Positions 9,201 through 55,859 of a stretch of 64,000 bases of DNA are shown here, piece after piece. The stretch lies in the NCBI RefSeq assembly GCF_020745735.1, contig NC_083418.1, forward strand, positions 49,679,776-49,743,775, written 5' to 3'. Position 1 is the first letter of the stretch. Each line of letters begins with the position of its first letter. Under the pieces are notes generated by a model, which was not told the DNA's origin, did not search any database, and saw only the letters and a program-made list of their open reading frames with translations. The DNA comes from Hemiscyllium ocellatum (Eukaryota). A program made the position numbers and the translations under genes.

Positions 9201-9518
9201 CTCAACCAGAAGTCCATTTGTCCACAGATCACATCACTGTTCTGACAGGAACAGAGAGATCTGTGAGTTGTAATGTTAAAGGATTTTACCCTAAACAATT
9301 TGCTCTCACCTGGGAAAAGATAACAAATAAAGGAAAAGAAACGCTGGAAGATCAGTTTTGCACAGGTGCTGCTACTCCCATGGATGATGGAACTTTCAGT
9401 GTTTCTAGTAGAGTCAAGATTGAACCAACATTGAAGGATGATGGTGCTATGTACCAGTGTACCGTAACTCACCAATCGGGTTCTGATATTAGCAAGCATA
9501 CTAGACTCACAGTTAAAG
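9201..9518 (+). CDS. NCR3LG1-like: Gene 1 (NCR3LG1/B7-H6-like): extracellular C1-set Ig exon, AQPEVHLSTD...SCNVKGFYPKQFALTW...DGTFSVSS...MYQCTVTH...RLTVK
   Basis: AG acceptor 9199-9200, GT donor 9519-9520, 318 nt, phase 1-1, open frame. Canonical C1 motifs CxVxGFYP, W, DGTF, YxCxVxH. Clearly paralogous to the gene 2 C1 exon, which follows a B7-H6-type V exon. Confidence 0.93.
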
Positions 9519-9929
9519 GTACGTTCTCTTCTTTGCAAAATATTTTTCACTCTGCTTTTGTTAAAACTTACACATGCTTCAACAATTTACACCATTTTGT
9601 TTAACATTGAATTTTAGCTGAATTATGCCTCTGACTTAAATCAGGAGTTATTTCTCTCCCATTACACAATAGAATTATTAATGTATACAACAATGATTTT
9701 TGAAATTAACTAGATATGACATTTCTAATCTTGGAATGTGAGCCAATTATACATGTGTTCAAAAACTTTTTAACACTAGATGTTAGAATTACATATGGAT
9801 TGCTTTTAGAATGAGTTTTATCAATTTTTGTTAAACTGCTAACAAAAGTAAATAAGTAGGGTTACATTGAAATTGCCTCTGCAGTGGAGTCTGCATATAT
9901 TCATACAGTTGATCAAAAGTACAGCTAGT

Positions 9930-10545
9930 TCTCCTATAACGCTGTAATTGCGTTCCAGCAAAATCTCGCTTATTATAAGTAATGGGGCCAGTGAGAAAAG
10001 TGGGGTTGGGCAGACCAGCAAAAGCTATCATTCACAATCGCTCAGAAATCACCCAGAAGTCTTAACACAAAGTGCAGCATAGCCTGAATGAAGATTGAAA
10101 TAATATTCAGTAACAAAACAAAAGTAAATTTAACACAATATATTTAAGAAAGAATGTAAGAAAGCTGCTCTATGTACGGTACCTCTCTCCAAACGCTGTT
10201 CTGTTGGCACCTGACACCAGCGCTCATGCAGAATAGCACAAAGACCGATGCTGACATCATACAGAGTGTTCGCGCATATGCAGAGTTGCATGAAGACCAG
10301 CACTAACATTTTGCATGTGTGGACATCGGTGCATGCACAGAATGAGTAGAACATCAGTGTGTGTGCAAAATGGCATGAAGAATTTGACATATGCATTGGC
10401 ACGTGCGCAGAACGAAGCACACAAACTGATCACTACTGGAATTGCGCCATTTTCAACGGAAGTAAGTGTTCTCCAAAACACCCTTCCATAATTCTTCAGC
10501 AATGTTATAGCCAAATTGCACTACTGAAAATGCGCGTTATCCCAG
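9930..10545. mobile_element. Possible Tigger/Tc1-like non-autonomous DNA element
   Basis: Starts TA-CAGCTAGTTCTCCTATAACGC; a degenerate inverse (gcgttat..agaa) lies near 10533. Confidence 0.3.
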
Positions 10546-10928
10546 AATGTCCTTTTATTAGGGAAAAAGCGAGAAAAGATTAATTTTTTTCAAAGGATAA
10601 GCTCCAATTGAGTGATAGTTAAGAGGTAAACAAACACTTATTAAAGTTGGAAAAAATAGTTAAAAGGGAAAATAGAGAATCATCAGGTACACAAATCTGA
10701 TCATTTATATATCAGGGAGGTCTTGATTAATGTTGTAGTTTTCATTCCTGATAATAGCTACTTTAGATCATGGATCTAAGTTAATCATGGATTCCCATAG
10801 CATTCAATGTTTGAGAGAGTGGGGTTCCTTAGGCCATTTCTTGACTCCAAAACATTTTTGTGCCTAGAAAAACCAATGTATTGAAATATTGTGCCATGCA
10901 CATGCAGTACTGCACATTCCTAGCTGAA

Positions 10929-11450
10929 ATAGAGTAATAGAGCTGCACAGCATGGAAACAGACCCTTCGGTGCAACTCGTCCATGCCAACCAGATATCCC
11001 AACCCAATCTAGACCCACCTGCCAGCACCCCACCCATCTCCCCCCCAAACCCTTCCTATTCATATACCCATCCAGATGCCTTTTAAATGTTGCATTTGTA
11101 CTCGCCTCCACCACTTCCTCTGGCAGATCATTCCATACACATACCACTCTCTGCGTGAAAACTTTGCCTTTTAGGTCTCTTTTATATCTTTTTCCCTCTC
11201 ACCCTAAACCTATGCTCTCTAGTTCTGGACTCCCCCCACCCCAGGGAAAAGACTTTGTCTATTTATCCTATCCATGTCCCTCATAATTTTGTAAATCTCT
11301 ATAAGGTCACCCCTCAGCCTCCAACGCTCCAGGGAGAACAGCCCCAGCCTGTTTAACATCTCCCTATATCTCAAATCCTCTAACTCTGGCAACATCCTTG
11401 TAAATCTTTTCTGAACCCTTTCAAGTTTCCCAACATCCTTTTGATAAAAA
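10929..11450 (-). mobile_element. CR1 LINE 3' fragment
   Basis: ORF 11219-11488 (KLERVQKRFTRMLP...RGDLIE) and the typical 3' tail. Confidence 0.9.
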
Positions 11451-12196
11451 TAAATCATTGATATAACAAATTTTGTGTAATTTTGCATTTATTTAAGTAA
11501 AGATGCCCCAGGATTGTCGAATTGTTTTACTTTTCTTCTTCAGATGGGTATTTCTGTACCATTTAATGCCAATATTTGGTATTGGTGATATCAAATGAAT
11601 ATTAATGATTTCAATCCAGATCCTTTTAATTTCAAAATGGTCCAACAGTACTGAATTTATTACTGGGGGTACAACTCTGAAACAATTGTTTCAGTTATCA
11701 TTCACATAAATTATAACAATGTCAATGTAACTTCATTTCCATGGATAGTCCCTGACTATCCCCATCTACAATGGAATTATTTTTCCCATGATACAAAATT
11801 AGCTGTAGAGTACATATCATGGGATTGGTGGATTTCTCTGCGTGAGCCTTGTGCCTTTTTGTTTCTGATCATCCTGTTCAGGTATGTTATGACACACATC
11901 CACAATGGGTGTGATTTGAACCTGTGCTTCCTGTCACTACCACTACACCATAAGAGCTTCATCTGGACCATTTTATCTCTTGGGCTTAATTGAATTTATC
12001 AGTAATACTTCCTGCTAGATGCTAGCATGTTCTTTTCAAGAGAGGATATTAACGGATTGTCATTTCAAATTCTTTAAAAACTTTATTGTGTTTAATTATT
12101 TTAAGTTATTGTTTAGTACAACACAGCATGGATGAAGTAGTTTATTTTCTGAGGTAATTTTAGACTAAATGCTTTTCTACCTGTGTTTCAATTCAG

Positions 12197-12307
12197 AGCC
12201 TGAAAAACATTCTTCAGCTTTAGCAGTTGCTGCAAGTATATTTGGTACTTTGCTGTTATGTGCAATGTTCTTAGCTTTTGGATGGCTCTATTGGAGAAGA
12301 AGAGGAG
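12197..12307 (+). CDS. NCR3LG1-like: Gene 1 transmembrane exon, EPEKHSSALAVAASIFGTLLLCAMFLAFGWLYWRRRG
   Basis: Acceptor tttcaattcAG (12195-96), donor GTaac 12308, 111 nt, phase 1-1. Hydrophobic run of about 25 aa ending in W-L-Y-W, followed by an RRR stop-transfer. Confidence 0.88.
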
Positions 12308-13544
12308 GTAACACATCCACTTATGAATATAGCATTCTTGTAATTTTTTGACTACTACTTGCATCTATTCCCTATTAGAGACTTGGGGTGTTGGTGCTCC
12401 TTCGGTCAAGTCCCCATATTCTCAGATGAATGTGTGCACGTTAGAGGGAAATTGACTGGTGGTGGTTTAACTTGGGTGTCACCACACCTCTGGAGAGGTG
12501 AAATGGAAGGACCTTTACGGTTACTTTAGACAATACATCAATTGAACCACATTGTTGGCATCACCCTGCATCGCAAACCAGCCATCCGGCCACCTGAGCT
12601 GTTTGTGCTCCTACTGTGGTATATAGAGAAAGGAACTTCAAGATTACGTTTAGCTGTAGTAGACAGTCCAGTCACAAATTGTGTCCCAAAGTTTGAGTAT
12701 TTGTATTCAAACACACATTGTGCTGATTCTCATCACATTTTTAAAATTTACTCATGTTTTACGAATGTCACGGTCTGGGCCAGCATTTGTTGCCTATTTC
12801 TAGTTACTCTTAAAAAGGGTTGAAGTGCTCTACCTTCTTGAACGGCTGTAGTCCACTTGGTGGACTACACATTGTCATTAGGGAGGCAAGTTCCGGGAAT
12901 TTAATCTGGCACACTAAAAGAATAGTGAAAGATTTCCAAATCTATATGGTGATTGGCTTGAATTTGAATTAGCTTTATCTTCACATGTACTCCACTCGCC
13001 AACAATTAGGGACCTAATGTGGTCAAATGAATGGGTGACTTGTGTGCCTTCCCCCGCCAGCTGCTTGTCCACCTGTCTCCCAGCAGGGAAGAACAGTGGC
13101 TAGTTTCCCAATTGACCACCTACCAGCTGAGTTGGGTAGGGAGTACAGGGGTGGATTCTGAAATCCATTTCCTTTTGACCCCCATCTCCCCCAAATCTGA
13201 GTCAAATCTTGCCACTTACCACCGCCTGCCCAAATGTCCACATCTTGTGAGAAGAAAATTAAAGAACACAACTTCTTGTTGCTGGATCACCAACAGAGTA
13301 GACTTTGACCAACAAACATTGGGATTCAGGGACTCCGATGCCCTTGCTCAGCTCTTAATGAACTAATTCTGTGGCAAGAGGGTTAGTTATCTCTCTGGTG
13401 TAAGTGCCTGCCTAATGCATATTCTTTGAAGTGAAAAGGGAAAAATCCCAACCAAAGTTTCCATTGGATGTAATTTACATGTTTTTTTTAATTTGTTTTT
13501 GGATTGAGAAAGGACAATGTAAACCTTTCTGAAACTACTGCTTA

Positions 13545-13850: not shown

Positions 13851-13944
13851 TGCATAGGCATTCTGCTTGTAGCCAAGCAAGAAAGTAAAACAGCGTAAGC
13901 AGATAAGAATGTTTATATTGTTAAGTTTTAATCTTCTTTATTAG

Positions 13945-14385
13945 TTCCTCCAGAAATTACTGAATTCAGCAAACCTTCCGTATTTCAACATTTTGAAAAA
14001 GGCTTCATTAATTACCAAGTCAATGGATTTAGACCTTCTGAGATTCAAGTTGTTTTAATGTTGAAGAGGACGGGGAATGAAAATGGAACAAAAATTTTTG
14101 AAAGGTGTTGCACACAGAAAACTGCAGAAAATTATAGGCAATTAGCGTTTGAAATTATTCGAAGTGAAGAGAGCCTTCTTCGAAGTGATTGTTGGCCAGA
14201 TGAATCCTTTTTGCCTTTGGAACCAACTTTATCCGAGAACAGTGACAGGACGTTCAAATTACAGGGCAGTGTTGAAGTCTGTCCTGATGTAAAACGTGAT
14301 AATGGGGCTGAATTAATTCTTCTTGTTTACCATGACACTCTTGCCCAACCTGCTTCAAAAGCTATAACACTGGAAGTTAAACAAG
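13945..14385 (+). CDS. NCR3LG1-like: Gene 1 post-TM Ig domain 1, a degenerate C1-like domain, VPPEITEFSKP...INYQVNGFRPSEIQVVL...DNGAELILLVYHDTL...ITLEVKQ
   Basis: Acceptor ttctttattAG 13943-44, donor GTagat 14386, 441 nt open, phase 1-1. Retains PP, GFRP, D-x-T-F and VxH-x-L motifs, but the B-strand Cys, C-strand Trp and F-strand Cys are replaced. Confidence 0.85.
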
Positions 14386-14643: not shown

Positions 14644-15015
14644 TCCCACCAAAAATGTCAAACATTGTGGTGCCACTGCAAGTCCATCATAATGAGCCTG
14701 CAGCCCTGATTTGTTCTGTCATTGGATTTAAACCAAAACCTCTTCAAATCATATGGCAACGAATCGGGCGGGATGATAAATTGGAAGAACTTCTGCGATT
14801 GGATCAGGAAAGGACCATCTTTGCTCGTGACAATGGGAACAATTGCAAGTATCATCATCAAATCAGTGAGGTAAAATATAAAGATAGATCCTATGGTATC
14901 ACCAGTGCCCTAGTTATTTTGCCAGATGTACTACAAGACCAAGGAACAAAGTATATCTGTCAAGTACGACATGTGGACACGGATGAGCAGAAAGATACAA
15001 TTCTGAAAATTACAG
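14644..15015 (+). CDS. NCR3LG1-like: Gene 1 post-TM Ig domain 2 (C1-set), VPPKMSN...LICSVIGFKPKPLQIIW...YICQVRH...ILKIT
   Basis: Acceptor AG 14642-43, donor GTatgt 15016, 372 nt open, phase 1-1. Canonical C, W and YxC are present. Confidence 0.9.
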
Positions 15016-15139: not shown

Positions 15140-15451
15140 CCCCACCAAAATCGAACGGGATAATATGTGATGCAGAAAAACCAGTTGCAGGAGAGTGCAT
15201 GACTTTGCACTGCAAAATACATTCTTTTTACCCCCAAAACATCACAATAACATGGCTCAAAGAAGGTGAAAAAATGTGGGAAGAATTCAATCAAAGTGGA
15301 CCCAAACCAGGAAATGATGGGCTCTATAACTTGACAACAAGTGTAAAGACTACACTGAGAGGAGCTGATGTTGGGAAGAAATACACTTGCCAAATACAGC
15401 ATGAAAGTCTAGTACAGCCTTTAGAAGTTGACTGGGTGCTTGATCAACTGA
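15140..15451 (+). CDS. NCR3LG1-like: Gene 1 post-TM Ig domain 3 (C1-set), APPKSNG...LHCKIHSFYPQNITITW...DGLYNLTTS...YTCQIQHESL
   Basis: Acceptor ctttttcAG 15138-39, donor GTaagt 15452, 312 nt open, phase 1-1. Textbook C1 motifs. Confidence 0.92.
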
Positions 15452-19740: not shown

Positions 19741-20061
19741 TATCCGCACCAAAGATAACCGAAGTTATAGCCGAACCTGCTCACCCAGAGGTGGGAAAAC
19801 CTGTAACCCTTTCCTGTAAAGCTTACGACTTCTTTCCAGAAGGCCATCAAATATCCTGGTTCAAAGGGTTTGAGAAAATTAAAGATGGAGTTAAAATGGA
19901 TGCCACTGTATTCGATAATTCAACTCGTTTGTACTCTCGTGTATCTAAAATGACATTCAAACCAAGTGTCATGGACCAAGGAAAAGATATCAAAATGGAA
20001 ATCCTTCACGCTGAGACTTCAAACAGCCCTGTCTCATCCAATTATCGTTTGAAACTATTTG
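19741..20061 (+). CDS. NCR3LG1-like: Gene 1 post-TM Ig domain 4, SAPKITEV...LSCKAYDFFPEGHQISWFKG...DQGKDIKMEILH...RLKLF
   Basis: Acceptor ttgtctgcAG 19739-40, donor GTaagt 20062, 321 nt open, phase 1-1. B-strand Cys and Trp present; F-strand Cys position is Met. Confidence 0.9.
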
Positions 20062-20717
20062 GTAAGTCTCGTTCCAACAAATCGTACGGCTTCAAAGAAA
20101 TTATGGAATGTTGAACAATTATTTGGAATGGACAGATGCTTCAAATTCATTAATTTGACACCTTTTTTTTGTAAAAACGTCTGTTTAATCAAGGAAGTCA
20201 GATGCAATGATCCATTTCATAGAATCCCTACAGTTTGTTAGCAGGCCATTCGGCCCATTGAATCCATACCCACCCTTCCACCTAGATCCTTCCCTATCCC
20301 AGTAACCTTGCATTTCCAGGGCTAATTCCCATAGTCTGCACATCCCTGGACACTAAAGGGGCAATTTAGCATAAGCAATCCACCTAAGCAGCACATCTTT
20401 GGACTGTGGGAGGAACAGGTATCGAATTGGAGTTTAATTAGCAGGGATCTCTGAGTGCAAAAGAAATTAACAATACTCAAGAAAAAGCCGTTTGAACTGA
20501 CAATAATTAGCCTTTATTGAAAATACTGCTGTAGTTAGGCTGAAACTTGAGGGGAGGATGAGATCCAAGTAGTTCTCTACTTCTCTTCCAAGTTTCATGC
20601 CTTTACAAAGAAAGAACTACATTAATTATTTTAAAATATGCTGAGGAATTACAGATTATCATGAAATGTACGTCAACCATCGCACTGAACCTTAGCCCGA
20701 AAAGCATTAATCATTTG

Positions 20718-20914
20718 CAGCTGAAAAATTTGTTGCTGGAAAAGCGCAGCAGGTCAGGCAGCATCCAAGGAGCAGGAGAATGATGTTTCGGGCATAAACC
20801 CTTCTTCCCGAAACGTCGATTCTCCTCCTTGGATGCTGCCTGACCTGCTGCGCTTTTCCTGGAACGCATTTTTCAGCTCTGATCTCCAACATCTGCAGTC
20901 CTCACTTTCTCCTA
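20718..20914. repeat. Fold-back Penelope-pLTR-derived mini-insertion with 12-bp target-site duplication
   Basis: Arms 20719-20791 and about 20807-20879 are reverse-complementary. ATTAATCATTTG occurs at 20706-17 and 20915-26. Confidence 0.8.
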
Positions 20915-21627
20915 ATTAATCATTTGTATCATTCCATAACTCTGTTCTGTTGTACGGATATTTTATTTAGGCTAAAATCTGCAGTTCAAAGTATCCAAGG
21001 AACCATTAAGAAGATTACTGAAGTATTGTCAAACTTGTGGAATTTATTTACATCCAGCCTGGTCCTGAAATCTGTTTCTGACCTTTTGCCACAGTCTTTC
21101 CAACTTACTGAACTATAATTGAGAGTTGACAATTTTTTTCCCATCATGCAATGTTAAATGTTCCTCACAATACCACATTTCTCTCTTTTGTCATATCATG
21201 ACAATCAGTTGTATGGGCACATTGAAAATTTCATGGAAAATAAATTAGCACAAGTAAACATGTAACCCTATTCCACCAGAAATACTATTAAGAGCAAAAA
21301 GGTTTTAAAGATCCAATCAAACATTTTGTGACTTAACCAAATCAACTAGCTCGGTGCGCTATAATCATGGAGTTCTTTGTCAGTGTTTTGTATGTGGTCA
21401 GCATGTTGATTAATATGTTCATCTAGGTTGGTAGTATTTTCAGAGGTATCCAGAATGTAAGTACAGCATTCCTGACCCACGACAGCACATGCTCCCGCTT
21501 GTAAGGCTAGCAGATAATCCAAAGCCAGTTGCTTCTGTCCGAACAGCCATAGCTCAGCTGCGACCACAGTCAGTGCTTGTCTAGTTGCCTTGGCTTCTAA
21601 TGCTGTCTCATTGGCCAGGTAGCCATA

Positions 21628-21955
21628 AGGTGGCACGGTGGCTCAGTGGTTAGCACTGTTGCCTCGGGGAACCGGGTTCGATTCCAGCCTCGGGCAACCG
21701 TCTGTGTGGAGGTTGCACGCTCTCCCTGTGTCTCCGTGCATTTTCTCCAGATGCTCCGGTTTCCTTCCATAATCCAAAGATATGCAGGTCAGGTGAATTG
21801 GCCATACTAAATTACCCATACTGTTCAAAGATATGTAGGTTAAGTGCATTAGTCTGGGGTAAATGTAGAGTAGCAGGGGAATGAGTCTGGGTGGGTTACT
21901 TTTTGGAAGGTTGGTGTGGACTTGTTGTTTCCATACTGTAGAGATTCTATAATTC
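21628..21955 (+). mobile_element. HE1-type SINE inserted into the ERV env
   Basis: ggtggcacggtggctcagtggttagcactg...gggttcgattcc head; it splits the env reading frame. Confidence 0.8.
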
Positions 21956-23184
21956 TAAAGGTATTCCAACGCTGAGGCCATGCAAACTAATTTGCTGGAT
22001 ACTCAGCCCATTCTGTAAAATGGAAAAGACAACATGAGGAACTGGTCTAGCCCTGTAATGGATCTCATACTTCATGGATGGTAGTTCTTAAGGGAGGTGA
22101 GGTGATGCATTAAGAGTACAATATAACCCAGATAGTAGGAACTATCCAATGGTAGGAAGCCATGGGTACGCTTTGGTGCTGTATATAAAGTATGTGCCAT
22201 TGTAAATTGTAAAATCATCAGTCAATGTCATCAAGGCTGCATGGTGGACTAGGCCCATAGACTATCAGATGCAATATTCCATATCCTGGTCCAATCACAG
22301 TTAAGCATCCCATTTCTCAAAATATTGACGACTGGGCCTTGCCAGTCAAATGTGAGATTACATTTGCTTTGCCTCATTAGCATTCCTTGTCCTAATTTTC
22401 GAAAACATTGGCACCCTGTAGAATTTGAATGTACTGTAAGGGAAGGAGGAAGTGATCGTGACTATATGCAGGCTGATGCCATGTTGAAAATGTAGTCATT
22501 TCATAACCTGCTGATTCCCATATTCTCATTTCCCCATTCAGCCCTGTGTGATTCCATTGTAACATCCGCTCGACTGTTTCTGATGTAGAGAAAGGGAGGG
22601 GTTGAAGAGATATTCCTTCCCTTGAGAATGTTTGGGGTTATGGATAGAACCCCAACATTTACTTATGTTCAATTTCTTGGCATACGTATATGACACCTGT
22701 AAATAGGTGTTTACATGCAGTTCCCAAGGAGGCTGGTTTGTTAATGTCAAATATTCACCTACGTCAAAGAATTAAAGAAGTCCAAAGAGTATCAAATGAT
22801 GCTCATGCTATGTTGTCGACTGGTTGAGGAGTAATCTTCTTACAATCAGATAGATGAACCCATTTGGAACATCCTTCAAGTTTGACTGAGGTTGGTGTTG
22901 TCAGTAGGACTTGAAAGGGGCCACTCCAGTGGTGTCCTAATTTGTTTCTTTCCCAACTCTTGATCAACACGTAATCCCCTGGGTTTCCTCATGGATACTG
23001 GGAGGCAATGGTATTTTCCTCAGATGGGCAATGTGATTGTCTGACCTGCAAGTGAAGAAACTTCAGAGAAAGAGTTAATTGTTTTAAGTAATTCTGCATT
23101 TGCTCGCCTATTACGTAAAGATGCACGCCCTCTAGAGGTTCAGCACGAGCATCCCACAGAGTCCTCATTGGCCGACCATAAGCT

Positions 23185-23309
23185 GATGAAGGGCTTTTGC
23201 CCGAAACGTCGATTTCGCTGCACTTTGGATGCTGCCTGAACTGCCGTGCTCTTCCAGCATCACTGATCCAGCATCTGGTTTCCAGCATCTGCAGTCATTG
23301 TTTTTACCT
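23185..23309 (+). mobile_element. 125-nt Penelope-pLTR-derived mini-element with hammerhead core, inserted in the ERV integrase with a 12-bp TSD
   Basis: CGACCATAAGCT at 23173-84 and 23310-21. CTGATGA-a-GGGC-tttt-GCCC-GAAAC-GTC at 23183-23210. Confidence 0.85.
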
Positions 23310-27801: not shown

Positions 27802-27849
27802 GTATTAAGAGTACAACCTCTGCTCAATTAAATGGATCGATTGATGCAG
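27802..27849 (+). CDS. NCR3LG1-like: Gene 1 48-nt micro-exon copy 1, GIKSTTSAQLNGSIDA
   Basis: ttctgtgttcAG acceptor and GTaaag donor, 48 nt, phase 1-1, no stop in the frame set by the flanking exons. Confidence 0.65.
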
Positions 27850-28388
27850 GTAAAGTGTCCACCTTGAGAGTTTTTGCTCCGTACATGTTTGGTTGTAATC
27901 CATAATAATGTCAGTGTGGTATTACAGACAACACACAAGATGATGTAGATATACCATTTTAGATACAGAGGAGGTGCTGCCTTCATTTCTGATTGTTAGG
28001 GTGATGTAATGGGTGACTCTTTAAAATGAAGCAGTGTTAATGTGGTTCCATCCAGCATCCCAGTTATCATTATCACTGCCTTACTTACACACTGTCAATA
28101 TGGATCTTTCTAATATAAGGAATTCTAGAAATCAGAGTTAACATTTCCAGTCCAGTGACCCTTCCTCAGAAATGCTGAGCTTTTCCAGCAATTTTTTTTT
28201 GTTTGTGATTTATAGCATCTGCAGTTCCTTTGGTTTTCATTTCATTACCATCTTATAATAGTCACGTTGAGTTTCTTGAATTGAATGTAATCGTTCAACT
28301 GTTTACTTGACATTGAAACTTTATATTGACAAGTAGATTTTTTTCACTGCTGTTGAGAATAGTTAATCTGTGATAACTTTGGATTCAT

Positions 28389-29918
28389 AGAGGCATAGAT
28401 ATAGAGATGTACAGCATGGAAACAGACCCTTTGGTCCAACTCATCCATGCCGAATAGATATCCCAATTCAATCTTGTCCCACCTGCCAGCACTCAGCCCA
28501 TATCCTCCCTACCCTTCCTATTCATATACACATTCAAATGCCTTTCAAATGTTGCAATTGTACCAGCCTCCACCACTTCCTCTGGAAGTACATTCTATAC
28601 TCTATCACCCTCTGTGTGAAACAGTTGCCACTTAGGGCTTTTTTATATCTTTTCCCTCTCACCCTAGACCAATGCCCTCTAGTTCTGAATTCCCCAACGC
28701 CAGGGAAAAGACCTTGTCTGTTTACCCTATCCATGCCCCTCATAATTTTGTAAACCTGTATAAGGTCACCCCTCAGCCTCCAATACTCCAGGAAAAAAAG
28801 TCCCAGCCTGTTCAGCCTCTCCCTCCAGCACAAATCCTCCAACCCTGGCAACATCCTTGTAGATCTTTTCTGAACCCTTTCATGTTTCACAGCATCTTTC
28901 CGATAGGAAGGAGACCAGAATTGTATGCAATATTCCAACAGTGGCCTAACCAATATCCTGTACAGCTACAACATGACTTACCGACTACTGTACTCAATAC
29001 TCTGACAGAGTTTTTAAAAAAGCATACCAAACACCTTCTTCACTATCCTATCTACCTGCGACTCCACTTTCCAGGAGCTATGAATCTGGACTCCAAGGTC
29101 TCTTTGTTCAGCAACACTCCCTAGGACCTTATCATTCAATGTATACATCCTGCAAAGATTTGCTTTCCCAAAATGCAGCACCTCACTTTTATCTGAATTA
29201 AATTCTGCCACTTCTCATCCCATTGGCCCGTCTGGTCCTGATCCTGTTGTAATCTGAGGTATCTTCTTCGCTGTCCACTACACCTCCAATTTTGGGGTCA
29301 TCTGCAAACTTACTAACTGTACCTCTTCTGCTCTCGTCCAAATCATTTATGTTAATGACAAAAGGTAGAGGGCCCAGCACCGATCCTTGTGGCACTTCAC
29401 TGGTCACAGGCCTCCAGTCTGAAAAACAAACCTCCACCACCACTATCTGTCTTCTAACTTTGAACCAGTTCTGTATTTAATTGGCTGGTTCTCCCTGTAT
29501 TCCGTGAGATCTCACCTTGGTAACCAGTCTCCAATGGGGATTCTTGTCGAACGCCTAACTGAAGTCCATATAGATCACATCAACCGCTCTGCCCTCATCA
29601 ATCCTCTTTGTTACTTCTTCAAAAAACTCAATCAGGTTTGTGAGACATGAATTCCCATGTACAAAGTCATGTTGACTATCCCTAATCAGTCCTTGCCTTG
29701 CCAAATACATGTACATCCTGTCCCTCAGGATTCTCTCCAACAACTTGCCCACCACCAACATCAGTCACGCTGGTCTATAGTTCCCTGGTTTGCACTTACC
29801 ACCCTTCTTAAATAGTGGCATCACGTTAGCCAACCTCCAGCCTTCCGATACCTCACCTGTGAATGTTGATGATACAAATATCTCAGCAAGATGTCCAGCA
29901 ATCATTTCTCTAGCTCAT
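28389..29918 (-). mobile_element. CR1 LINE 5'-truncated copy (duplicate 1)
   Basis: RT ORF pieces at 28534-28953, 29198-29443 and 29555-29761. Confidence 0.92.
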
Positions 29919-30008
29919 TACTATTAGAAGAGTTACTTAATATTGAATATTCTAAGGATGAACTTCACTTATCTAATGTTGAATTTAACTAAGTCTTTCT
30001 GTGTTCAG

Positions 30009-30056
30009 GTGTTAAGAGTACAACCTTTGCTCAAGGTAATGGATCGATTGATGCAG
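30009..30056 (+). CDS. NCR3LG1-like: Gene 1 48-nt micro-exon copy 2, GVKSTTFAQGNGSIDA
   Basis: Duplicate of 27802-27849 with intact AG and GTaaag. Confidence 0.6.
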
Positions 30057-30593
30057 GTAAAGTGTCCACCCTGAGAGTTTTTGCTCCGTACATGTTTGGT
30101 TGTAATCCATAATAATGTCAGTGTGGTATTACAGACAACACACAAGATGATGTAGATATACCATTTTAGATAGAGAGGAGGTGCTGCCTTCATTTCTGGC
30201 TGTTAGGGTGATGTAATGGGTGTTCCTTTAAAATGAAGCAGTGTTAATGTGGTTCCATCCAGCATCCCAGTTATCATTATCACTGCCTTAGTTACACTGT
30301 CAATATGGATCTTTCTAATATAAGGAATTCTAGAAATCAGAGTTAACATTTCCAGTCCAGTGACCCTTCCTCAGAAATGCTGAGCTTTTCCAGCAATTTT
30401 TTTTTGTTTGTGATTTATAGCATCTGCAGTTCCTTTGGTTTTCATTTCATTACCATCTTATAATAGTCACATTGAGTTTCTTGAATTGAATATAATCATT
30501 CAACTGTTTACTTGACATTGAAACTTTATATTGACAAGTAGATTTTTTTCACTGCTGCTGAGAAAAGTTAATGTGTGATAACTTTGGATTCAT

Positions 30594-32054
30594 AGAGGCA
30601 TAGATATAGAGATGTACAGTATGGAAACAGACCCTTCGGTCCAACCCGTCCATGCCGAACAGATATCCCAATTCAATCTGCCAGCACTCAGCCCATATCC
30701 TCCCTACCCTTCCTATTCATATACACATTCAAATGCCTTTCAAATGTTGCAATTGTACCAGCCTCCACCACTTCCTCTGGAAGTACATTCTATACTCTAT
30801 TACCCTCTGTGTGAAACAGTTGCCGCTTAGGGCTTTTTTATATCTTTTCCATCTCACCCTAGACCAATGCCCTCTAGTTCTGAATTCCCCAACGCCAGGG
30901 AAAAGACCTTGTCTGTTTACCCTATCCATGCCTCTCATAATTTTGTAAACCTGTATAGGGTCACCCCTCAGCCTCCAATACTCCAGGAAAAAAAGTCCCA
31001 GCCTGTTCAGCCTCTCCCTCCAGCTCAAATCCTCCAACCCTGGCAACATCCTTGTAGATCTTTTCTGAACCCTTTCATGTTTCACAGCATCTTTCCAATA
31101 GGAAGGAGACCAGAATTGCATGCAATATTCCAACAGTGGCCTAACCAATATCCTGTACAGCTGCAAGATGACTTCACTATCCTATCTACCTGCAACTCCA
31201 CTTTCAAGGAGCTATGAACCTGCACTCCAAGGTCTCTTTGTTCAGCAACACTCCCTAGGACCTTATCATTCAATGTATACATCCTGCAAAGATTTGCTTT
31301 CCCAAAATGCAGCACCTCGCATTTATCTGAATTAAATTCTGCCACTTCACATCCCATTGGCCCATCTGGTCCTGATCCTGTTGTAACCTGAGGTAACTTT
31401 CTTCGCTGTCCACTACACCATCAATTTTGGTGTCATCTGCAAACTTACTAACTGTACCTCTTATGCTTTCATCCAAATCATTTATGTTAATGACAAAAAG
31501 TAGAGGGCCCAGCACCGATCCTTGTGGCACTTCACTGGTCACAGGCCTCCAGTCTGAAAAACAAACCTCCACCACCACTATCTGTCTTCTAACTTTGAAC
31601 CAGTTCTGTATTTAAATGGCTGGTTCTCCCTGTATTCCGTGAGATCTCACCTTGGTAACCAGTCTCCAATGGTGAATCTTGTCGAACGCCTTACTGAAGT
31701 CCATATAGATCACATCTACCGCTCTGCCCTCATCAATCCTCTTTGTTACTTCATGAAAAAACTCAATCAAGTTTGTGAGACATGAATTCCCATGCACAAA
31801 GCCATGTTGACTATCCCTAATCAGTCCTTGCCTTGCCAAATACATGTACATCCTGTCCCTCAGGATTCCCTCCAACAACTTGCCCACCACCAACGTTAGT
31901 CAAGCTGGTCTATAGTTCCCTGGTTTGCCCTTACCACCCTTCTTAAATAGTGGCATCACGTTAGCCAACCTCCATGTCTTCTGATACCTCACCTGTGACT
32001 TTTGATGATACAAATATCTCAGCAAGATGTCCAGCAATCATTTCTCTAGCTCAT
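30594..32054 (-). mobile_element. CR1 LINE 5'-truncated copy (duplicate 2, with small internal deletions)
   Basis: RT ORF pieces at 30729-31166, 31270-31578 and 31612-31893. Confidence 0.92.
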
Positions 32055-32145
32055 TACTATTAGAAGAGTTACTTAATACTTGAATATTCTAAGGATGAAC
32101 TTCACTTAATTAATGTTGAATTTAACTAAGTATTTCTGTGTTCAG

Positions 32146-32193
32146 GTATTAAGAGTACAACCTCTGCTCAAGGAAATGGATCGATTGCTGCAG
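32146..32193 (+). CDS. NCR3LG1-like: Gene 1 48-nt micro-exon copy 3, GIKSTTSAQGNGSIAA
   Basis: Duplicate with intact AG and GTaaaa. Confidence 0.6.
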
Positions 32194-32923
32194 GTAAAAT
32201 GTCCATCTTGAGAGTTATTGTTTCGTACATGTTTGGTTGTAATCTATAGTGATGTCAGTGTGGCATTTCAGACGACACACAAAATGATGTAGATATACCA
32301 TTTTAGGTAGAGAGGAGGTGCTGCCTTAATTTGTGGCTGTTGGGGTGATGTAATGGGTGATCCTTTAAAATGAAGCAGTGTTAATGTGGTTCCATCCAGC
32401 ATCCCAGTTATCATTATCACTGCCTTAGTTACACACAGCTGTATGAGTATCCAAAATACTCTGATTATCTCAGGTTGGTAGCTGCTGTGAAACGGACAAA
32501 AATGCCAAACACCGATATCGTTACTTTAAAGAACATTTAGAACAGTACTGCACAGTGCAGTCCCTTCGGCCCGCAGTGTCATTGCTGGCCTTTTATCCTA
32601 TTCCAATTACTTTTACAATTTTGGATAGATTTATTTTGCTGTTCCTTATGCTTAATTCTCTGTAATTTGCCATTAGACAGCATACAACAGGGATTTCTAA
32701 TCCAGTAAGAATTCTACAAGAGAGGAAGTCAGATTAGTGACACTCTAGTGGAAAACCAATAACATCTACTCACCAGCAGAAGTAATGACCTCTTCGACAT
32801 TTAGCCAAGGATGAGAAGGAATAGCAAATTCCTTCCAGTGTTTTGATCAAAATTTGTAAAGTGTGTAACTATCGTAATCCAGGTGGTGTGATTTGGCTGG
32901 ATTTTAGGCTAATGCGAGCTACT

Positions 32924-33752
32924 TATAAGAGTCATACAGCATGGAAACAGACCCCTCAGTCCACCTTGCCCAGACTTCCCAATCTGACCTAGCCCCATTT
33001 GCCAGCATTTGGTCAGTATCCCTTGAAACCCTCCCAACCATGTACACATCCAGATGCTTCTTATATGTTGAAATTGTAATTGTCTCCACCACTTCCTCTG
33101 GCACCTCATTTCATACCCGCACCACCATCTACGTGAAAAAGTTACCCCTTATATCCGTCTTAAATCTTTGCCTTCTTACCTGAAGCCTATGCCCTAGTTT
33201 TGGTCTCCCTCCACCCTAGGAAGAAGACCTTGGCTATTCTTCCATCCATCCATACCTCTTATGATTTTATAAACCAGCCTAAGGTTACCAGTCAGCCTCT
33301 GCTCCAGTGGAAAAAGCCTTAATCTATTCAACCTCATCCTATAGCTCAAACCTATCAGTCCCAGCAACATGCTTGTAAATCTTTTCTGCACCCTCTCAAG
33401 TCTAACAACATCTTTCCTACAGAATGGCATCCAGAATTGTATGCAGTATTCTAAAACTGGACTCAGCAATGCCTTATAAAGCCACAACATGACGTTCCAA
33501 CTCTTATATACAATGTTCTGACCAATGAAGGCAAGTATGCCGCCTTCACTACCTTTTCAAGGAAAAATGCACCTGCACCACTGGATCCCATTGTTCAGCA
33601 ATACTTCCCAGGGCCCTACCATTAGCTGTATAAGTCGTGCACTGGTTTGGCTTACCATAATGTGACACCTCAAACGTATATAAATTGAACTCCATCTGCA
33701 GTTCCTCAGCCCATTGGCCCATCTGATCAAGGTCCTGATGTACTCTGAGATA
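32924..33752 (-). mobile_element. CR1 LINE 3' fragment
   Basis: ORF 33194-33490 (LEYCIQFW...ERVQKRFT). Confidence 0.85.
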
Positions 33753-33775
33753 ATTTTATTTTGTCCAACGGTTCA

Positions 33776-35594
33776 GAAGAGGCGATGGAGAGTTTGAGTA
33801 GCTAGGAAGGATTTAAAGATAGACCTCAGAAGAGCAAAGAGGGGACATAAACAGTCTTTAGCAGTTAGAAAAAAGGAGAACCCTAAAGCTTTCTATAGGT
33901 ATATGAGGAATAAAAGGATAACGAGGGTAGGAATAGGGCCTGTCAAAGACAGAAGTGGGAAGTTGTGTGTGGACCCTGTGGAGACCGGAGAGATGCTAAA
34001 CAAATATTTCTCATCTGTTTTCACTCAGGAAAAGGAGATTATTGTAGAGGAGAAGACTAGATACACACTATTAGACTTGAAAGGAATGAGGAAAGAGGAG
34101 GTGTTAACAATTCTAGAAGGTGTGAAAATAGATAAATCCCCTGGACTAGATGGGATTTTTCCGAGAATTCTCTAGGAAGGAGATGGCTGAGCCTTTGGCC
34201 TTGATCTTTGAGTCGTCATTGTCTACAGGTTTAGCACCAGAGGAGGACTGGTGGATTCCAAATTTGTGTTTTTGTTCAAGAAGGCCAGTAGAGATGACCC
34301 AGCTAATTATAGACCAGTGAGCTTTATGTTTTAGGAAAAGTTTTGGGGGTAAAGATTATAAGTGATAAGATTTATAATTATCTGGCAAGCAATAATTTGA
34401 TTGGAAATAGTTAACATGGATTAGTTAAGGGCAGGTCATGTCTCACAAACCTAATTGAGTGTTTTGAGAAGATGACCAAGCATATGGGTGAGGGTAGGGC
34501 AGTTGACGTGGTGTACATGGACTTCAGTAAAGCTTTTGATAAGGTTCCACATGGTAGGCTACTGGAGAAAATACGGAGGCGTGGATTGAAGGTGATTTAG
34601 CAGTTTGGACTAGAAACTGGCTTTCTGTAAGAAGGCAACGAGTGGTGATTGATGGAAAATATTCAGCCTGGAGTCCGGTTATTAGTGGTGTGCTACAAGA
34701 ATCTGTTTTGAGACCACTGCTATTTGTCATTTTTATAAACTACTTGGTTAGTAAGTTTTTAGATGATACTAAAGTCGGTGGAGTGGTGGACAGTGTGGAA
34801 GAATTTTGTAGGGAGACTTGGATAAACTGCAGAACTGAGCTGAAAGGTGGCAAATGGAGTTCAATGCCGATTAAATGTGAGGTGATTCACTTTGGGAAGA
34901 ATAACAGGAAGTTAAATACTGGGTCAATGGAAAGATTCTTGGTCGTATGGATGTGCAGAGGGATCTTGGTGTTCATGTACATAGGTCCCTGAAAGTTGCC
35001 ACCCAGGCTGATAGTGCTGTTAAGCATGCATACAGTGTGTTGGGTTTTATTGGAAGAGGAATTGAGTTCTGGGACTGTGATGTCAAGCTGCAACTGTACA
35101 AAACACTGTGCGGCCTCACTTGGAATATTGTGTACAGTTCTGCTTGCCCTATTACAGAAGGATGTGGAAGCTGTGGAAAAGGTGCAGAGGAGATTTATCA
35201 GGATATTACCTTGTCTGAAGCAAAGGCCTGTGGGAATTGGATCTGTTCTCATTGGAGAGAAGGCTAAGAGGTGACTTAATAGAGACATATAAGATGATCA
35301 GAGGATTAGATAGGGTGGGCAATGAGAGTCCTTTTCCTAGGATGATGACATCTGCTTGTACAAGGGGGCCTAGCTGCGAATTGAGGAGTGATAGATTTCA
35401 GACAGATGTCAGAGGCAGGTTGCCTGCCAATGTAGTTAACGTAGCCACATTAGGAGCATTTAAACAGTCCTTGGATAAGCATATGGATGTTGATGTGATA
35501 GTGTCGGGTGATGGGCTTGGATTAGTTCACAGGTTGGCTCAACCTCTAGCGCCGAAGGGCCTGTTCTGCACTGTATTGTTCTATGTTCTATGTT
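33776..35594 (+). mobile_element. CR1 LINE ORF2 fragment with (TTCTATG)n tail
   Basis: ORFs 33903-34175, 34642-34992 and 35237-35695, plus the DFSKAFDKVPH motif. Confidence 0.88.
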
Positions 35595-36904
35595 ATTATT
35601 TATACAGGTATCTGAGATCTCTTATATATTTGTTTCTCAATTTCTTGATGACTGTGGTGGGGGAGAAATGGGGGGAGAATAACCTAATAAGGTGATCATC
35701 CTTTCTTATTTTTAAGTTTTGCCCATATAAATTCACTGAACATTCTCCCATGAATATCCTCCCGAAGTACAGCAGTAATGTTATCCTTAATCAAACACCC
35801 TCTCCTCTCATCACTTGCCTCCCTTTCTATCCTTTGTATAGCATCTATACCCTAGAACATTAAGCAACCAGTCCTGTCCATCCCTGACATACTTATCTGT
35901 AATAGCTGCAATATCCCAGTGCCATGTTCCCAACCATGCCCCGAGTTCATATGCTTTATCAGTCAGGCCTCTTGCATTGAAGTAAACGCAGTTTAAATTA
36001 TCACGAAGGCAGTGAATCCGTAGGTGACCTGCTCTAGACTGCCTGCTTTAGTCCTGTATTCCGTATCTCTTTGTTCTGGCATCTCATTGGCTTGCAGGAA
36101 ATGTGCATGTCCTGCCACCCTTTTGAACTATCATGGTCATGGTACTGAAAAGGCTCTTGGTTGTACACGGCCATTTGTCTGCAAGAAAGTAGTCAATATT
36201 AATAGTGAGAGGAATAAATTTGCATGGCAAACCCTTCTCTAGTCTGATACACAACACCAGCATTGCAGCAAACTAAGCAACAGTGAAGGAACTGCTCTTT
36301 GCTGCCATGGTCTCTAGTATGTTGACCCAACTCTCAATATTTCAAGATGGGCTACGGTGCATATAAGGACTCCTCCAGTGTACCCATTATCTGCACAATT
36401 CTGAATTTGTCTTATATCTCACACAATTGAAGGCTGAACTGCTCGATCATTCTGGTTTTGAGCAAAGTATCAAGGAATTCTGATCCTTATGTCAGTAACT
36501 TCTTTCACTGCACAAGTGACCTGTGTATTACCCAGTGCACTCCCCTCACATGCAGTCTCTGATGGAAGTCTCTGCCCTATTGTTTACGAGAGAGAGGAGG
36601 GGCGCTGGTTGTTTCAGTGTAAATCTGGCTGCACCGGAATCACAATTAAAGGTGTCTCTATACAAAAAAAAGAAAAATATTATTTAAACTGGTACCTATG
36701 TCTGTTTAAACAGAAAGAGTAATATGGATCTCGTGTTGTGCTTCACTGAAGATTAATAAAATGTACAGCAAGAAGACATTGACAATTTCTTTGTGACAAA
36801 AATCCTTCTAACTTGCTGTCTGTAAGACTTCAAATAATTTCATCAAAATCTATGTAGCTACCTTCAGATTGAAGTGGAATATTTCAGTGTTTGGGACTTA
36901 ACAC

Positions 36905-37190
36905 AGGTGGCATGGTGGCACAGTGGTTAGCACTGCTGCCTCACAGTGCTGGAGACCTGGGTTCAATTCCTGCCTCAGGCGACTGACTGTGTGGGGTTTG
37001 CACATTCTCCCCGTGTCTGTGTGGGTTTCCCCCGGTTTCCTCACACAGTCCAAAAATGTGTAGATTAGGTGAATTGACCATGTTAAATTGCTTGTAGTGT
37101 TAGGTGAAGGGATAAATATGGGTTGCGGGTCGGTGTGGACTTGTTGGGCCAAAGGGCCTGTTTCCACACTGAGTACGCTAATCTTAACTG
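36905..37190 (+). mobile_element. HE1-type SINE
   Basis: tggcacagtggttagcactgctgcctcacag...gggttcaattcc. Confidence 0.8.
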
Positions 37191-37940
37191 ACTACTGACA
37201 CTTTCTTCAGATTTATAGTGGAAGCTGTGGTAAATAATACATTCACAGCTACTTCTTGGATCTCACTGACTTGAAAGTGACTGAAGTATTTTGTGGCATG
37301 GAGTGACTTTGTGCTTAATAGATGAATTCATGGTAACTGTCCTCTGTATCTTCTGCAGCTCCCTTTTTGTCCATTCCCTAGATGTACCATATTTAGGGAA
37401 GATTTCTCATGTTGGAAACATGGCCATTTTGATTTGCAACACATGCTTCTTGCCCATATGTGTAAATTCGAATAAAGTCACTTTTAACTATTTTTCTAAC
37501 ATGAGGTTAACAACATTTTAATCTCACACTCAATTTTTCCCAGTTTGAAGAACAGAATTCCTTCTTACATATTGATTATTGAATAGGTTTGTTTTTTTTC
37601 TCATCTCTGACTCCATCTTCATTCTTCTTTGAACTCCATGTCTTCTACTTTGGGACAGAAGATAACTAGATGTTTTCTTATTACTTCCATGGTTTTTATT
37701 TTCATCTTGAACATTAAGGCACATAATTATTGCAGCAGCAGTGCTGACTCTTGGTAAAGTATCTTAGCATTTGTAGAATGGCAGAAGTTGGGATGAAAAA
37801 TCAAAAGACCCCTAGTGTTGGAGTGCACAGTGCTACTAGAACTACTGAATATTGTTGTGTTCCTTTTCATAATTAAAATAAAATCAATATCTTTGTTACA
37901 TTATTAAGAGTTTTATTTATTTCAATTTTTATTCCAACAG

Positions 37941-38237
37941 ATAAACCAGAGATATCACCGATAACGTGCCAAACACCAGCTCCTAAAGTTGGCCAACCTG
38001 TAACGATTTCCTGCACTGTTACGGGATGTGCTTTAGGAGACTGTTGCATTACCTGGTACAAGGGTATTTACCCTTTTAAAGAAACCAACTGCATTGAAAA
38101 CAAACCATTTGAAAATGGTGTGGGTTTCACCACTTCGTTAACTTATACACCAAAGCAAGAAGATGACAATTGTCAGTTCTGCGTTGAAATTAATATTGAG
38201 ATGGACACAATTAGCAGATTCTTCACAATGAAATTAG
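37941..38237 (+). CDS. NCR3LG1-like: Gene 1 post-TM Ig domain 5, Cys-rich, DKPEISPITCQTPAPKVGQPVTISCTVTGCALGDCCITWYKG...DDNCQFCVEIN...FFTMKL
   Basis: Not in the ORF track because it has no upstream Met. Acceptor tttattccaacAG 37939-40, donor GTtaag 38238, 297 nt open, phase 1-1. The N-terminal half parallels domain 4 (PxVGxPVTxSC...WxKG). Confidence 0.85.
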
Positions 38238-38589
38238 GTTAAGTTGATCAATATATTCAGATTTTGCAGCTATAAAATGAAGTAACATTCTTGTTTAGAT
38301 TTCATTATGTATAATAAAATGTTTTCATACATATGACCAACAATAGCTTTGTTTGTATGTATCCCCATATATAGTCTGAGATTTACTGGTCAGAAACTTG
38401 TCCTGGAACATTGTAAGCTCTGTATCTATATGCAAGTACTAGTATTTTTGTTCTTGTTAACTGAATGATTAGAAGCAAAGGGAAAATCCATTACCGAGCT
38501 CCTAACAAGTTGAGTATTAAGCATACGCCTTCAAGGCCAATCTTTGTGTCAAAACAGAATAACTTAATGAAAGAAAGTGACGTAGAGCA

Positions 38590-38830
38590 GGACAGGTAAA
38601 AACAATGACTGCAGATGTTCGAAACCAGATTCTGGATTAGTGGTGCTGGAAGAGCACAGCAGTTCAGGCAGCATCCGAGGAGCTGTAAAATCGATGTTTC
38701 AGGCAAAAGCCCTTCATCAGGAATACAGGCAAAAAACCTGAAGGGTGGAGAGATAAATGAGAGGAGGGTGGGGGTGGGGAGAAAGTACCATAGAGTACAA
38801 TAGGTGAGTGGGGGAGGGGATGAAGGTGAT
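38590..38830 (-). mobile_element. Penelope pLTR fragment with hammerhead core at 38693-38720 (minus strand)
   Basis: Minus strand reads CTGATGA-a-GGGC-tttt-GCCT-GAAAC-ATC. Confidence 0.7.
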
Positions 38831-38864
38831 AGGTCGGGGGGGGGGGGGGTAGGGTGTACAGCAC

Positions 38865-40755
38865 AGTTCAAGCCCTTTGTCCCTCGATATTATGTTGGCA
38901 TTTTATCCTATTCTAAGATCAGACTAACCTACATACCCTTCATTATACGATCTTCCATGTGCTTATCCAAGAGTCACTTAAATGTCCCTAATGTATCTGA
39001 CTCTACTACCACTGCACACCCAACACACACACTCACTCTCTGTGTAAAGAACCTACCTCTGAAATCTTTCCTAAACCTTCCTCCAAATACTTTAAAATTA
39101 TGCCCTCTCGTGATAGACATTTCTGCCCTGGGAAAGTCTCTGGCTATCTGCTCTATCTATGCCTCTCAACACCTTGTACAATGTATCAAGTCACCTTTCA
39201 TCCATCTTCACTCCAATGAGAAAAGCGTTAGTTCCCTCGATCTTACTTCATAAGACATGCCCTCCAGTCCAGACAGCATCCTAGTAAATCTCCTCTGCAC
39301 CCTCTCTAAGCTTTTCACATCTTTCCTGTAATGAGGTGACCAGAACTGAATACAGTATTCCAAGTGTGGTCTAACCAGGGCTTTATACAGCTGCAGCATA
39401 ACTCTTGCAGCTCTTAAACTCAATCCCCCTTTAATGAAAAACAGCCATCCATATGCCTTCTTAACAATCTTATCAACTTGGGTAGCAACTTTGAGGGATC
39501 AATGGGCATGGACCCCAAGATCTATCTTTTCCTCCACACTACCAAGAATCCTGCCTTTTAACCCTGTATTCTGCATTCAAATTCAATCTTCCAAAGTGAA
39601 TGACTTCACACTTTTCCAGGTTGAACTCCATCTGCCACTTATCCGGCCTGTTCTGCATCCTGTCAATGTCCTGTTGCAACCTACAACAGCCTTCCACACA
39701 ATCCACAACTCCTCCAACCTTCATGTCATCAGTAAACTTATTAACGCATAACTCCACTTCCTCAGCCAAGTCATTTATAAAAATTACAAAGAGCAGAGGT
39801 CATAGAAGCGATCCCTGCGGGATACCATTAGTCATCAATGTGTTTTATCACATCCTCAAAGAATTCTTTAAGGTTTGAGAGGCATGACCTGCCCCTCACA
39901 AAGCCATGTGGACTACCTCTAATCAAACTATGGTTTTCCAAGTAATCATAAATCCTCTCCTATATTTTTGCCTACCACTGATGTTAAAACTGACTAGTCT
40001 GTAATTCCCAGAGTTCTCCCTATTCCCTTTCTTGATCACGAGAATAACATTTGCCACCCTCCAATCATCTGACATTACTCCAGATGACAGTGAGGATGCA
40101 AATACCATCACCTATGGCACAGCAACCTCTTGCCACACTTCCCATAGTTATCCAGGATATATCCCGCCTGGCCCAGGGGGTTTATCTATCCTTATGTTTT
40201 TTCAAAATTTTCAGCACATCTTCCTTTCTAACACATCAGTCTGAGTCACACTGTCCTCAGAAATGTCAAGGTCCATCACAGTAGTGAATATTGAAGCAAA
40301 GTATTCATTAAAGACTTTCTCTACTTCCGACTGCAAGCACGTTTCCTCCACTATCCCTGATCGGGCCTGCCCTCACTCTGGCCATCCTCCTGTTCCTTAT
40401 GTAGGTGTAGAACCATTTAGGGGCATGTATAGGGGAAAAAGCCAAGGTCCTTTCCCTGTGGTGGGGGAGTCCAGAACTAGCAGGCATAGGTTAGGGTGAG
40501 AGGTGAAAGATTCAAAAGAGAGCTAAGGGGTAACTTTTCACACAGAGGGTGGTGTGTGTATGGAATGAGCTGCCAAAGGAAGTGTTAGAGGCCAGTACAG
40601 TTAAACATTTAAATGGCATCTGGATGGGTATATGAATAGGAAGGGTTTAAAGGGATCTGGGCCAAATGCTGGCAAATGGGACTAGATTAATTTAGGATAT
40701 CTGGTCAGCGTGGATGAGTTGGACTGACTGTTTCCATACTGTACATCTCTGACTG
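38865..40755. mobile_element. CR1 LINE fragments (minus strand about 38865-40335, plus strand about 40410-40755)
   Basis: ORFs 39208-39423 and 39539-39769 with CR1 RT motifs. Confidence 0.85.
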
Positions 40756-41099
40756 AATAATAGTAAGAATAATAAGATACATTTGTTGACAACTGTTGGA
40801 TCCACTTTAAAATGAAGACTGTTTGCTATATTTGTTGTTTATATGTATCCACTATTAACTTAGAAACTATCAGTATTAATGTCTGTTTCAAAAAATGGAA
40901 AAGTTCTGAACTATTTTTGTATTCTGCTCATAACAATCTTGGTCTAAATTTGGCTTTTTGCTAAGGGTTTTTTTTATAGATGTTACTATTTAGAACAGTG
41001 TTTGTATTTTGATAAGACTATTCAACTGACTATTCAACTATTCAATTATTTTTTGAGAAATAGATACAAGAATAGATATTTCTGCTTTTTCCTCTCTAG

Positions 41100-41173
41100 T
41101 CTCTCTTACGACACACGCCCTGCAGTTGGGAAAGATAATTCAGGAATATTTTTCAGCACGAAATCTAAGCTGA
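41100..41173 (+). CDS. Candidate terminal coding exon of gene 1, VSLTTHALQLGKIIQEYFSARNLS*
   Basis: Strong acceptor tctgctttttcctctctAG, phase-1 entry open for 24 codons to TGA 41171-73. Three AATAAA at 41643, 41659 and 41711 in an AT-rich region downstream. No homology support. Confidence 0.35.

Positions 41174-55821: not shown

Positions 55822-55859
<38 letters not shown>

Follow-up and report, generated by a model that had tools for sequence, protein, structure and literature searches.

We analyzed a 64,000-nucleotide stretch of genomic DNA from the epaulette shark Hemiscyllium ocellatum (hereafter the window, in whose positions all coordinates are given), which holds the larger 3′ part of one gene, annotated by RefSeq as LOC132824217. 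The window is gap-free vertebrate DNA with much CR1/LINE debris, and stop-free stretches with immunoglobulin (Ig) hallmarks were found on its + strand at 9.2, 13.9, 14.6, 15.1, 19.7 and 37.9 kb, with further ones at 58.1 and 60.6 kb. Ten + strand exons, each with an AG acceptor and a GT donor, were present at the coordinates proposed in an earlier inspection of the letters without database searches (the sequence-only reading), and the length of every internal exon is a multiple of three (phase 1-1), as had been claimed. Splicing the ten exons in silico produced a stop-free translation that was 100% identical to residues 149-920 of XP_060694506.1, the 920-residue RefSeq "uncharacterized protein LOC132824217" of H. 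ocellatum, which confirms the initial observation and shows that it coincides with public annotation. When this protein was compared with the window by tblastn, identity was 94-100% per exon, with a match of 77% for the transmembrane (TM) segment that extends into the intron; the TM of the protein is identical to the one encoded in the window. In GCA_020745735.1 the whole gene covers 43.1 kb. Its leader and V exons are not within the window but about 5 kb upstream of its start, and the leader is contained in the RefSeq product.

The first exon in the window (9201-9518, 318 nucleotides, residues about 148-253 of XP_060694506.1) encodes a C1-set ectodomain, with a Pfam C1-set match of E 8e-12 (9203-9517), AG/GT borders and 99% tblastn identity. 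It is followed by the TM exon (12197-12307), a phase 1-1 cassette of 111 nucleotides, identified by its AG/GT borders and its hydrophobicity, which encodes EPEKHSS-ALAVAASIFGTLLLCAMFLAFGWLYW-RRR and ends in FGWLYW-RRR. Beyond it come five exons for Ig-fold domains, which we called IgA to IgE. IgA (13945-14385) is a derived C1-like domain with no Pfam match. IgB (14644-15015; Pfam C1-set E 1e-8) is a C1-set domain with an intact Cys-Trp-Cys pattern and a conserved HxISEVxYxDxSY loop, IgC (15140-15451; E 1e-15) conforms best of all tail domains to the canonical C1-set, and IgD (19741-20061; E 1e-9) is a C1-set domain devoid of the F-strand Cys. Three copies of a 48-nucleotide micro-exon (27802-27849, encoding IKSTTSAQLNGSIDA, 30009-30056 and 32146-32193), which lie in a 2.2-kb tandem triplication and correspond to residues 774-821 of the RefSeq product, encode a flexible linker. 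The last coding exon, IgE (37941-38242), includes the stop codon, ends in FFTMKLG, is 98% identical to XP_060694506.1 and gave a sub-threshold Pfam Ig match. The part of the protein beyond the TM exon amounts to 629 residues, the length predicted from the sequence alone.

In the RefSeq model of LOC132824217 the TM exon is spliced to the Ig exons. Homologous models, about 75 in number and drawn from more than 30 species, show the same join, as does a 7.5-kb Logan contig (SRR22028074) with an uninterrupted open reading frame (ORF) of 2910 nucleotides that encodes 969 residues, in which the Ig train comes after the TM. The product of this contig is 87% identical to a Lissotriton model, and thus comes from a newt-like species; as the ORF is uninterrupted despite the giant size of salamander genomes, the contig must represent spliced RNA. 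A search for transcripts of LOC132824217 itself among Logan-derived proteins returned RefSeq models only. It is conceivable that the prediction merged two genes, a short one of the B7-H6 type and a downstream one that encodes Ig domains only, given that all Ig exons are phase 1-1: such compatibility proves nothing by itself, and the exon joins in this gene come from a RefSeq prediction. However, no leader-like exon was found between 12307 and 13945, and the join recurs in those models and in the transcript contig, with a colinear domain order in all of them. We regard a fusion artefact as very improbable.

A product that usually ends soon after the TM, by read-through or an alternative 3′ end, so that the protein would be a short-tailed V-C1-TM ligand in which the Ig exons are included only occasionally, is somewhat easier to imagine. 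If the donor at 12307 is left unused, another 14 codons are read in frame (G-NTSTYEYSILVIF-stop, with TGA as the stop codon; 12308-12351, + strand), which include a YxxL motif, and truncated isoforms are annotated in Chiloscyllium. Nevertheless, none of the homologue models ends at the TM, and through more than 400 million years the tail has been conserved to the same degree as the ectodomain, hence translated and selected, which makes a mainly short-tailed product improbable.

The V and C1 domains of XP_060694506.1 (residues 38-253) were compared with the proteins of solved structure in the PDB. Their best match was human B7-H6 (6YJP, 3PV6, 4ZSO; E 3e-27), and the next family was TAPBPR (E 5e-16); for the ectodomain of the basking-shark homologue the corresponding values were 4e-37 and 8e-14. 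The gene had been described as B7-H6-like from its sequence, and this comparison bears that out: its V-set plus C1-set ectodomain is closest to B7-H6 among solved proteins, and with a leader and one TM the product has the form of a single-pass type I protein. The tail, for its part, matched C1 domains of the IgA1 heavy chain, of the major histocompatibility complex (MHC) class I alpha-3 domain and beta-2-microglobulin, of SIRP and of shark UrIg2. UrIg2 was considered as the family of LOC132824217 and rejected, since the TM of UrIg2 follows its C1 train and its V domain is of the VJ type.

A HMMER scan with IgC against 1.84 billion representative sequences matched 1501 proteins, many of them long and with 5-15 matching stretches each. 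In a local screen, the models with the join described above (about 75, from more than 30 species) had a hydrophobic span directly between C1 and IgA. They share a colinear order of leader, V, C1, TM, a cluster of Lys and Arg residues, IgA, IgB, IgC, IgD, more Ig domains, a linker and IgE, with KLS as the C-terminal end. This order was found in many sharks and rays, in Callorhinchus, Erpetoichthys, Polypterus, Latimeria and Protopterus, and in frogs, salamanders, caecilians and Alligator. Four homologues mapped onto the window by tblastn were colinear with it, and an alignment of 23 tails displayed the same domain order. The layout, including the TM, is also present in the elephant-shark entry V9K7L7 of UniProt, whose V9K series we take to be derived from cDNA.

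Several of these proteins already carry a family name. The depositor of the nurse-shark sequence QTT61906.1 (UniProt A0A8A9WSM4, 1092 residues) gave it the name "natural killer cell cytotoxicity receptor 3 ligand (B7H6)", and models with the same layout from alligator, Bombina, Pelobates and Rhinophrynus bear the NCBI name NCR3LG1; the epaulette-shark gene itself is labelled 'uncharacterized'. As LOC132824217 has IgA, IgB, IgC, IgD, linker and IgE in the colinear order of these non-mammalian B7H6 proteins and ends in KLG where they end in KLS, sequence comparison places it in the B7H6/NCR3LG1 family in an ancestral non-mammalian form, made up of leader, V, C1, one TM exon and a C1-derived Ig train. 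Judged from the same comparisons, the Ig domains behind the TM are the common and ancient form of B7H6 in lineages as far apart as sharks and alligators, with mammals as the exception. Given that the layout recurs in models already named B7H6 or NCR3LG1, the gene appears to be an ordinary non-mammalian B7H6; the suggestion that it is a special paralogue is not supported, as proteins of this layout are public under the family name in nurse shark, alligator and several frogs. The sequence-only reading had also mentioned Ig-containing tails in some ectotherm B7-H6 models, which these data bear out. With sequences and names public, LOC132824217 adds one more member to a known family whose architecture is conserved, unusual and apparently unstudied. 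A full-text literature search, which did not reach the key 2012 paper on B7H6, found no description of Ig domains behind the TM in B7H6.

We also examined the five domains of the tail individually. The Pfam C1-set profile (PF07654) was reached by IgB (35.4 bits), IgC (57.9) and IgD (38.7), whereas IgE scored 14.7 against a threshold of 21 and IgA did not match; I-set profile scores were sub-threshold for all tail exons. Profile-profile comparison with hhalign nonetheless identified IgA (98.1%, E 9e-14) and IgE (97.3%, E 2e-11) as homologous to IgC. IgA carries an insert of about 40 residues between the C and D/E strands and, in this gene, has both canonical Cys residues and the Trp replaced; some paralogues retain Cys-Trp-Cys. 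Across the family, IgE is the domain conserved at the C-terminus. AlphaFold2 modelling of a 634-residue tail with 23 aligned homologues gave a mean predicted local distance difference test (pLDDT) score of 83, and five beta-sandwich domains of about 90. Disorder was limited to the IgA insert and the micro-exon linker (linker pLDDT of about 25). The best Foldseek matches of the tail were IgM, IgE and IgG heavy chains, titin I65-I70 (second-best), UrIg2 and SIRP. Hence, of the claim of five C1-like domains, the Ig fold stands for all five and the Pfam C1-set assignment for three, while IgA and IgE are C1-derived by profile comparison. Mean identity among homologues was 41-45% for the tail domains, compared with 42-43% for the ectodomain; being as conserved as the ectodomain, the tail domains are under selection.

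The pattern of cysteines was counted in 27 homologues (23 for IgF, one of two additional domains, F and G, found in some relatives). In the V and C1 ectodomain the Cys, Trp and Cys positions were kept in 27/27, and IgB was equally invariant, with 27/27 at each of its three positions; for IgC the counts were 25/27, 27/27 and 27/27. IgD has kept its B-strand Cys and its Trp, with Met, Val, Ile or Leu at the F-strand position in all 27. IgF has Phe at the F-strand Cys position in 20 of the 23 homologues, IgG has Ser or Thr at the B-strand Cys position, IgE has mostly Val at the F-strand Cys position, and IgA has lost most of its canonical Cys across homologues. The canonical B-F Cys pair with the C-strand Trp is thus not shared by the tail as a set and is intact solely in IgB and IgC; five of the eight tail domain types have been without an intact canonical pair since before the split of sharks and tetrapods. 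The tail also contains many non-conserved odd Cys, eight of them in the IgE of this gene. The ancient loss of a single Cys in IgD, IgF, IgG and IgE, and of most Cys in IgA, agrees with a cytosolic tail.

Within the window, 12197-12307 encodes the sole convincing type-I membrane span of the + strand, all other hydrophobic stretches lying in unrelated frames or repeats. XP_060694506.1 has a single hydrophobic span, at residues 259-286, with RRR after it. A second TM was searched for in this protein and in 40-odd homologues; none was found, the one internal TM being followed by nothing hydrophobic, as the sequence-only reading had asserted for the shark protein. In 26/27 homologues the 15 residues past the TM had a net charge of +1 to +6, and the residues ahead of it were neutral or acidic. 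One cleaved leader, a single TM and a cluster of Lys and Arg after it place the tail in the cytosol by the positive-inside rule. N-glycosylation sequons occurred in the tail at chance level (observed/expected of 1.08) and were weakly enriched in the ectodomain (1.33). A cytosolic tail is the best-supported prediction, and we consider it probable.

Several observations weigh against this placement and what might be built on it. To our knowledge, C1-set domains occur otherwise only in the lumen or at the cell exterior. The Cys pairs of IgB and IgC have been invariant for more than 400 million years, which is compatible with real disulfides; the surviving half-cystines of the other domains are themselves nearly invariant, so that an invariant Cys is no proof of a disulfide. 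A few tail sequons are common to 9 of 20-23 species, approximately equal to the best sequon of the ectodomain, so that sequons do not decide the topology, and the shifts in amino-acid composition between ectodomain and tail are small and come from sequences that are not independent. The transcript support for the gene structure comes from other species, XP_060694506.1 being a predicted model, and any scaffold or inside-out function of the tail is pure inference, just as the decoy, sensor or oligomerisation roles put forward in the sequence-only reading are speculative. Moreover, models that are devoid of exactly the TM exon (34-38 residues) exist in four species: as isoforms that differ in this respect from a sister isoform in Hemitrygon akajei (X6), Rana temporaria (X2) and Bombina bombina (X2), and in Scyliorhinus torazame, whose model GCB65803 has no TM exon relative to the S. 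canicula orthologue. In the window, too, an in-frame skip of the 111-nucleotide TM exon is possible and would give TRLTVK-VPPEITEF. Such products would put the whole train outside the cell, which makes its cytosolic location a prediction and not a fact.

These TM-less models raise the question of whether the train works extracellularly, with the TM exon serving as a cassette, a secreted V-C1-(Ig)5 chain (a soluble, antibody-like B7H6) as the key product, and a secondary membrane form with a cytosolic tail that does no more than persist without harm. The C1 ancestry of the domains, a class otherwise extracellular, would suit such a product, as would the invariant Cys-Trp-Cys of IgB and IgC and the moderate sharing of some tail sequons. 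However, just about 4 of about 80 models are without the TM, which is present in V9K7L7 of the elephant shark, in QTT61906.1 of the nurse shark and in the contig from a newt-like species. The early loss of the canonical pair from most tail domain types would be very unusual for secreted C1 domains, and the numerous odd Cys, such as those of IgE, also speak against secretion. We consider a mainly secreted function unlikely, although clearly less so than either a short-tailed product or a fused gene model.

Overall, the explanation that we favour as the probable one is that of a B7H6/NCR3LG1 gene whose main product is a type I membrane protein with a cytosolic Ig train. The V and C1 domains would face outward as a putative NKp30-type ligand, and the 629-residue train, made up of five domains and the micro-exon linker, would lie on the cytosolic side, where it may bind proteins as a rod or scaffold, independently of disulfides, and so connect the cell interior with ligand display. 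From a minor splice form without the in-frame TM exon, the entire chain would be secreted. We advance only tentatively the broader proposal that the C1-derived train is truly cytosolic in the main isoform, that this represents the ancestral state of B7H6, kept from sharks to crocodilians and replaced in mammals, and that the train might be a sensor or scaffold coupling the intracellular state to the display of a natural killer (NK) cell ligand.

In humans, B7-H6 is the ligand through which the NK receptor NKp30 recognizes tumours and stress; the control of its display from inside the cell is poorly understood. By itself LOC132824217 is one additional family member and establishes no new principle. 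As a family, the B7H6 proteins of cartilaginous fishes, bichirs, lobe-finned fishes, amphibians and alligators have five to eight conserved Ig-fold domains behind the membrane anchor, as conserved as the receptor-binding part. If these are cytosolic, they would break the rule that C1-set domains are extracellular, would be the first constant domains of the antibody/MHC type to work inside a cell, and would point to a lost inside-out control of an NK ligand. If the train is instead mainly secreted by means of TM skipping, the product would be a non-rearranging, soluble V-(C1)n molecule, relevant to the origin of antibodies.

Human B7-H6 (NCR3LG1; PDB 3PV6/4ZSO/6YJP) resembles the shark protein in its V-set plus C1-set ectodomain and its single-pass type I form. 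In contrast to the 629 residues with five Ig-fold domains that follow the TM in the shark, its tail is free of Ig domains. This human tail is described as gag-like, with immunoreceptor tyrosine-based inhibitory motif (ITIM), SH2 and SH3 motifs. Butyrophilins are B7-related V-C-TM proteins with a cytosolic B30.2/SPRY domain and offer a possible model for inside-out control. They resemble the shark protein in combining a B7-like ectodomain with a folded cytosolic domain, but this is an analogy only, as the fold of that domain is B30.2/SPRY and not Ig, and their tail has no sequence relation to that of the shark gene. Titin, obscurin and MyBP-C (PDB 3B43) have tandem cytosolic Ig-fold domains that work without disulfides. 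Those trains, however, are I-set domains of soluble sarcomeric proteins, whereas the shark tail is C1-derived and membrane-tethered, and the resemblance is confined to the fold. UrIg2 (PDB 9DMX) has a long C1 train of variable number which matches the shark tail in sequence and fold. In UrIg2 of elasmobranchs a non-rearranging V domain is followed by nine C1 domains, each with a canonical disulfide, and the TM comes after this extracellular train (PMC12227049); in the shark B7H6 gene the TM comes before the train. The nurse-shark B7H6 QTT61906.1 has the same colinear layout as the epaulette-shark gene, with per-domain identities of 45-72% (57-72% for the Ig domains). It differs, together with many other homologues, in having the two additional domains F and G. 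The epaulette-shark gene has the three 48-nucleotide micro-exons in place of an acidic, Tyr-containing linker.

The linker and the number of tail domains proved to be variable. The 2.2-kb unit that carries the micro-exon is tandemly triplicated at 27410-32404 (+ strand), with 88-98% identity between copies and a CR1-like insert in two of them. Since the micro-exon and its flanking introns are equally similar, the copies are recent. In the RefSeq product they form a Ser/Thr-rich linker without Tyr between IgD and IgE, and in relatives isoforms differ by exactly one unit of 15-16 residues in the same linker region. In several sharks (P0151, P0178 and P0012) a Tyr-x-Asn motif of the ITIM or Grb2-SH2-binding type occurs as VHYENI, SPYSNL or TYENI in an acidic linker that precedes the last Ig domain. 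The domains F and G lie between IgD and the linker in the B7H6 of nurse shark, whale shark, basking shark and catshark. Remnants of their exons were sought in the 18-kb intron between IgD and IgE (20062-37940, + strand), and none was detected. As F and G are absent here and orthologue models of bamboo shark are without IgD, even closely related species differ in how many tail domains they have.

A second tandem B7H6-like gene starts in the window on the + strand, with a V-set exon at 58087-58455 (Pfam 3e-12) and a C1-set exon at 60640-60960 (2e-10). Its best match was the Pristis pectinata LOC127577746 lineage (69% and 57% identity), a paralogue group that differs from that of LOC132824217; the window ends before the TM and tail exons of this second gene. 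The intergenic region that separates the two genes contains, at 51900-56000 (+ strand), simple repeats of the dinucleotide type, which are translated as VCVCV, HTHTH and SLSLS runs. Long reverse-transcriptase-like ORFs, fragments of the LINE/CR1 type, are located on the same strand at 33798-35692, in the last intron of LOC132824217, and at 41885-43074, downstream of it.

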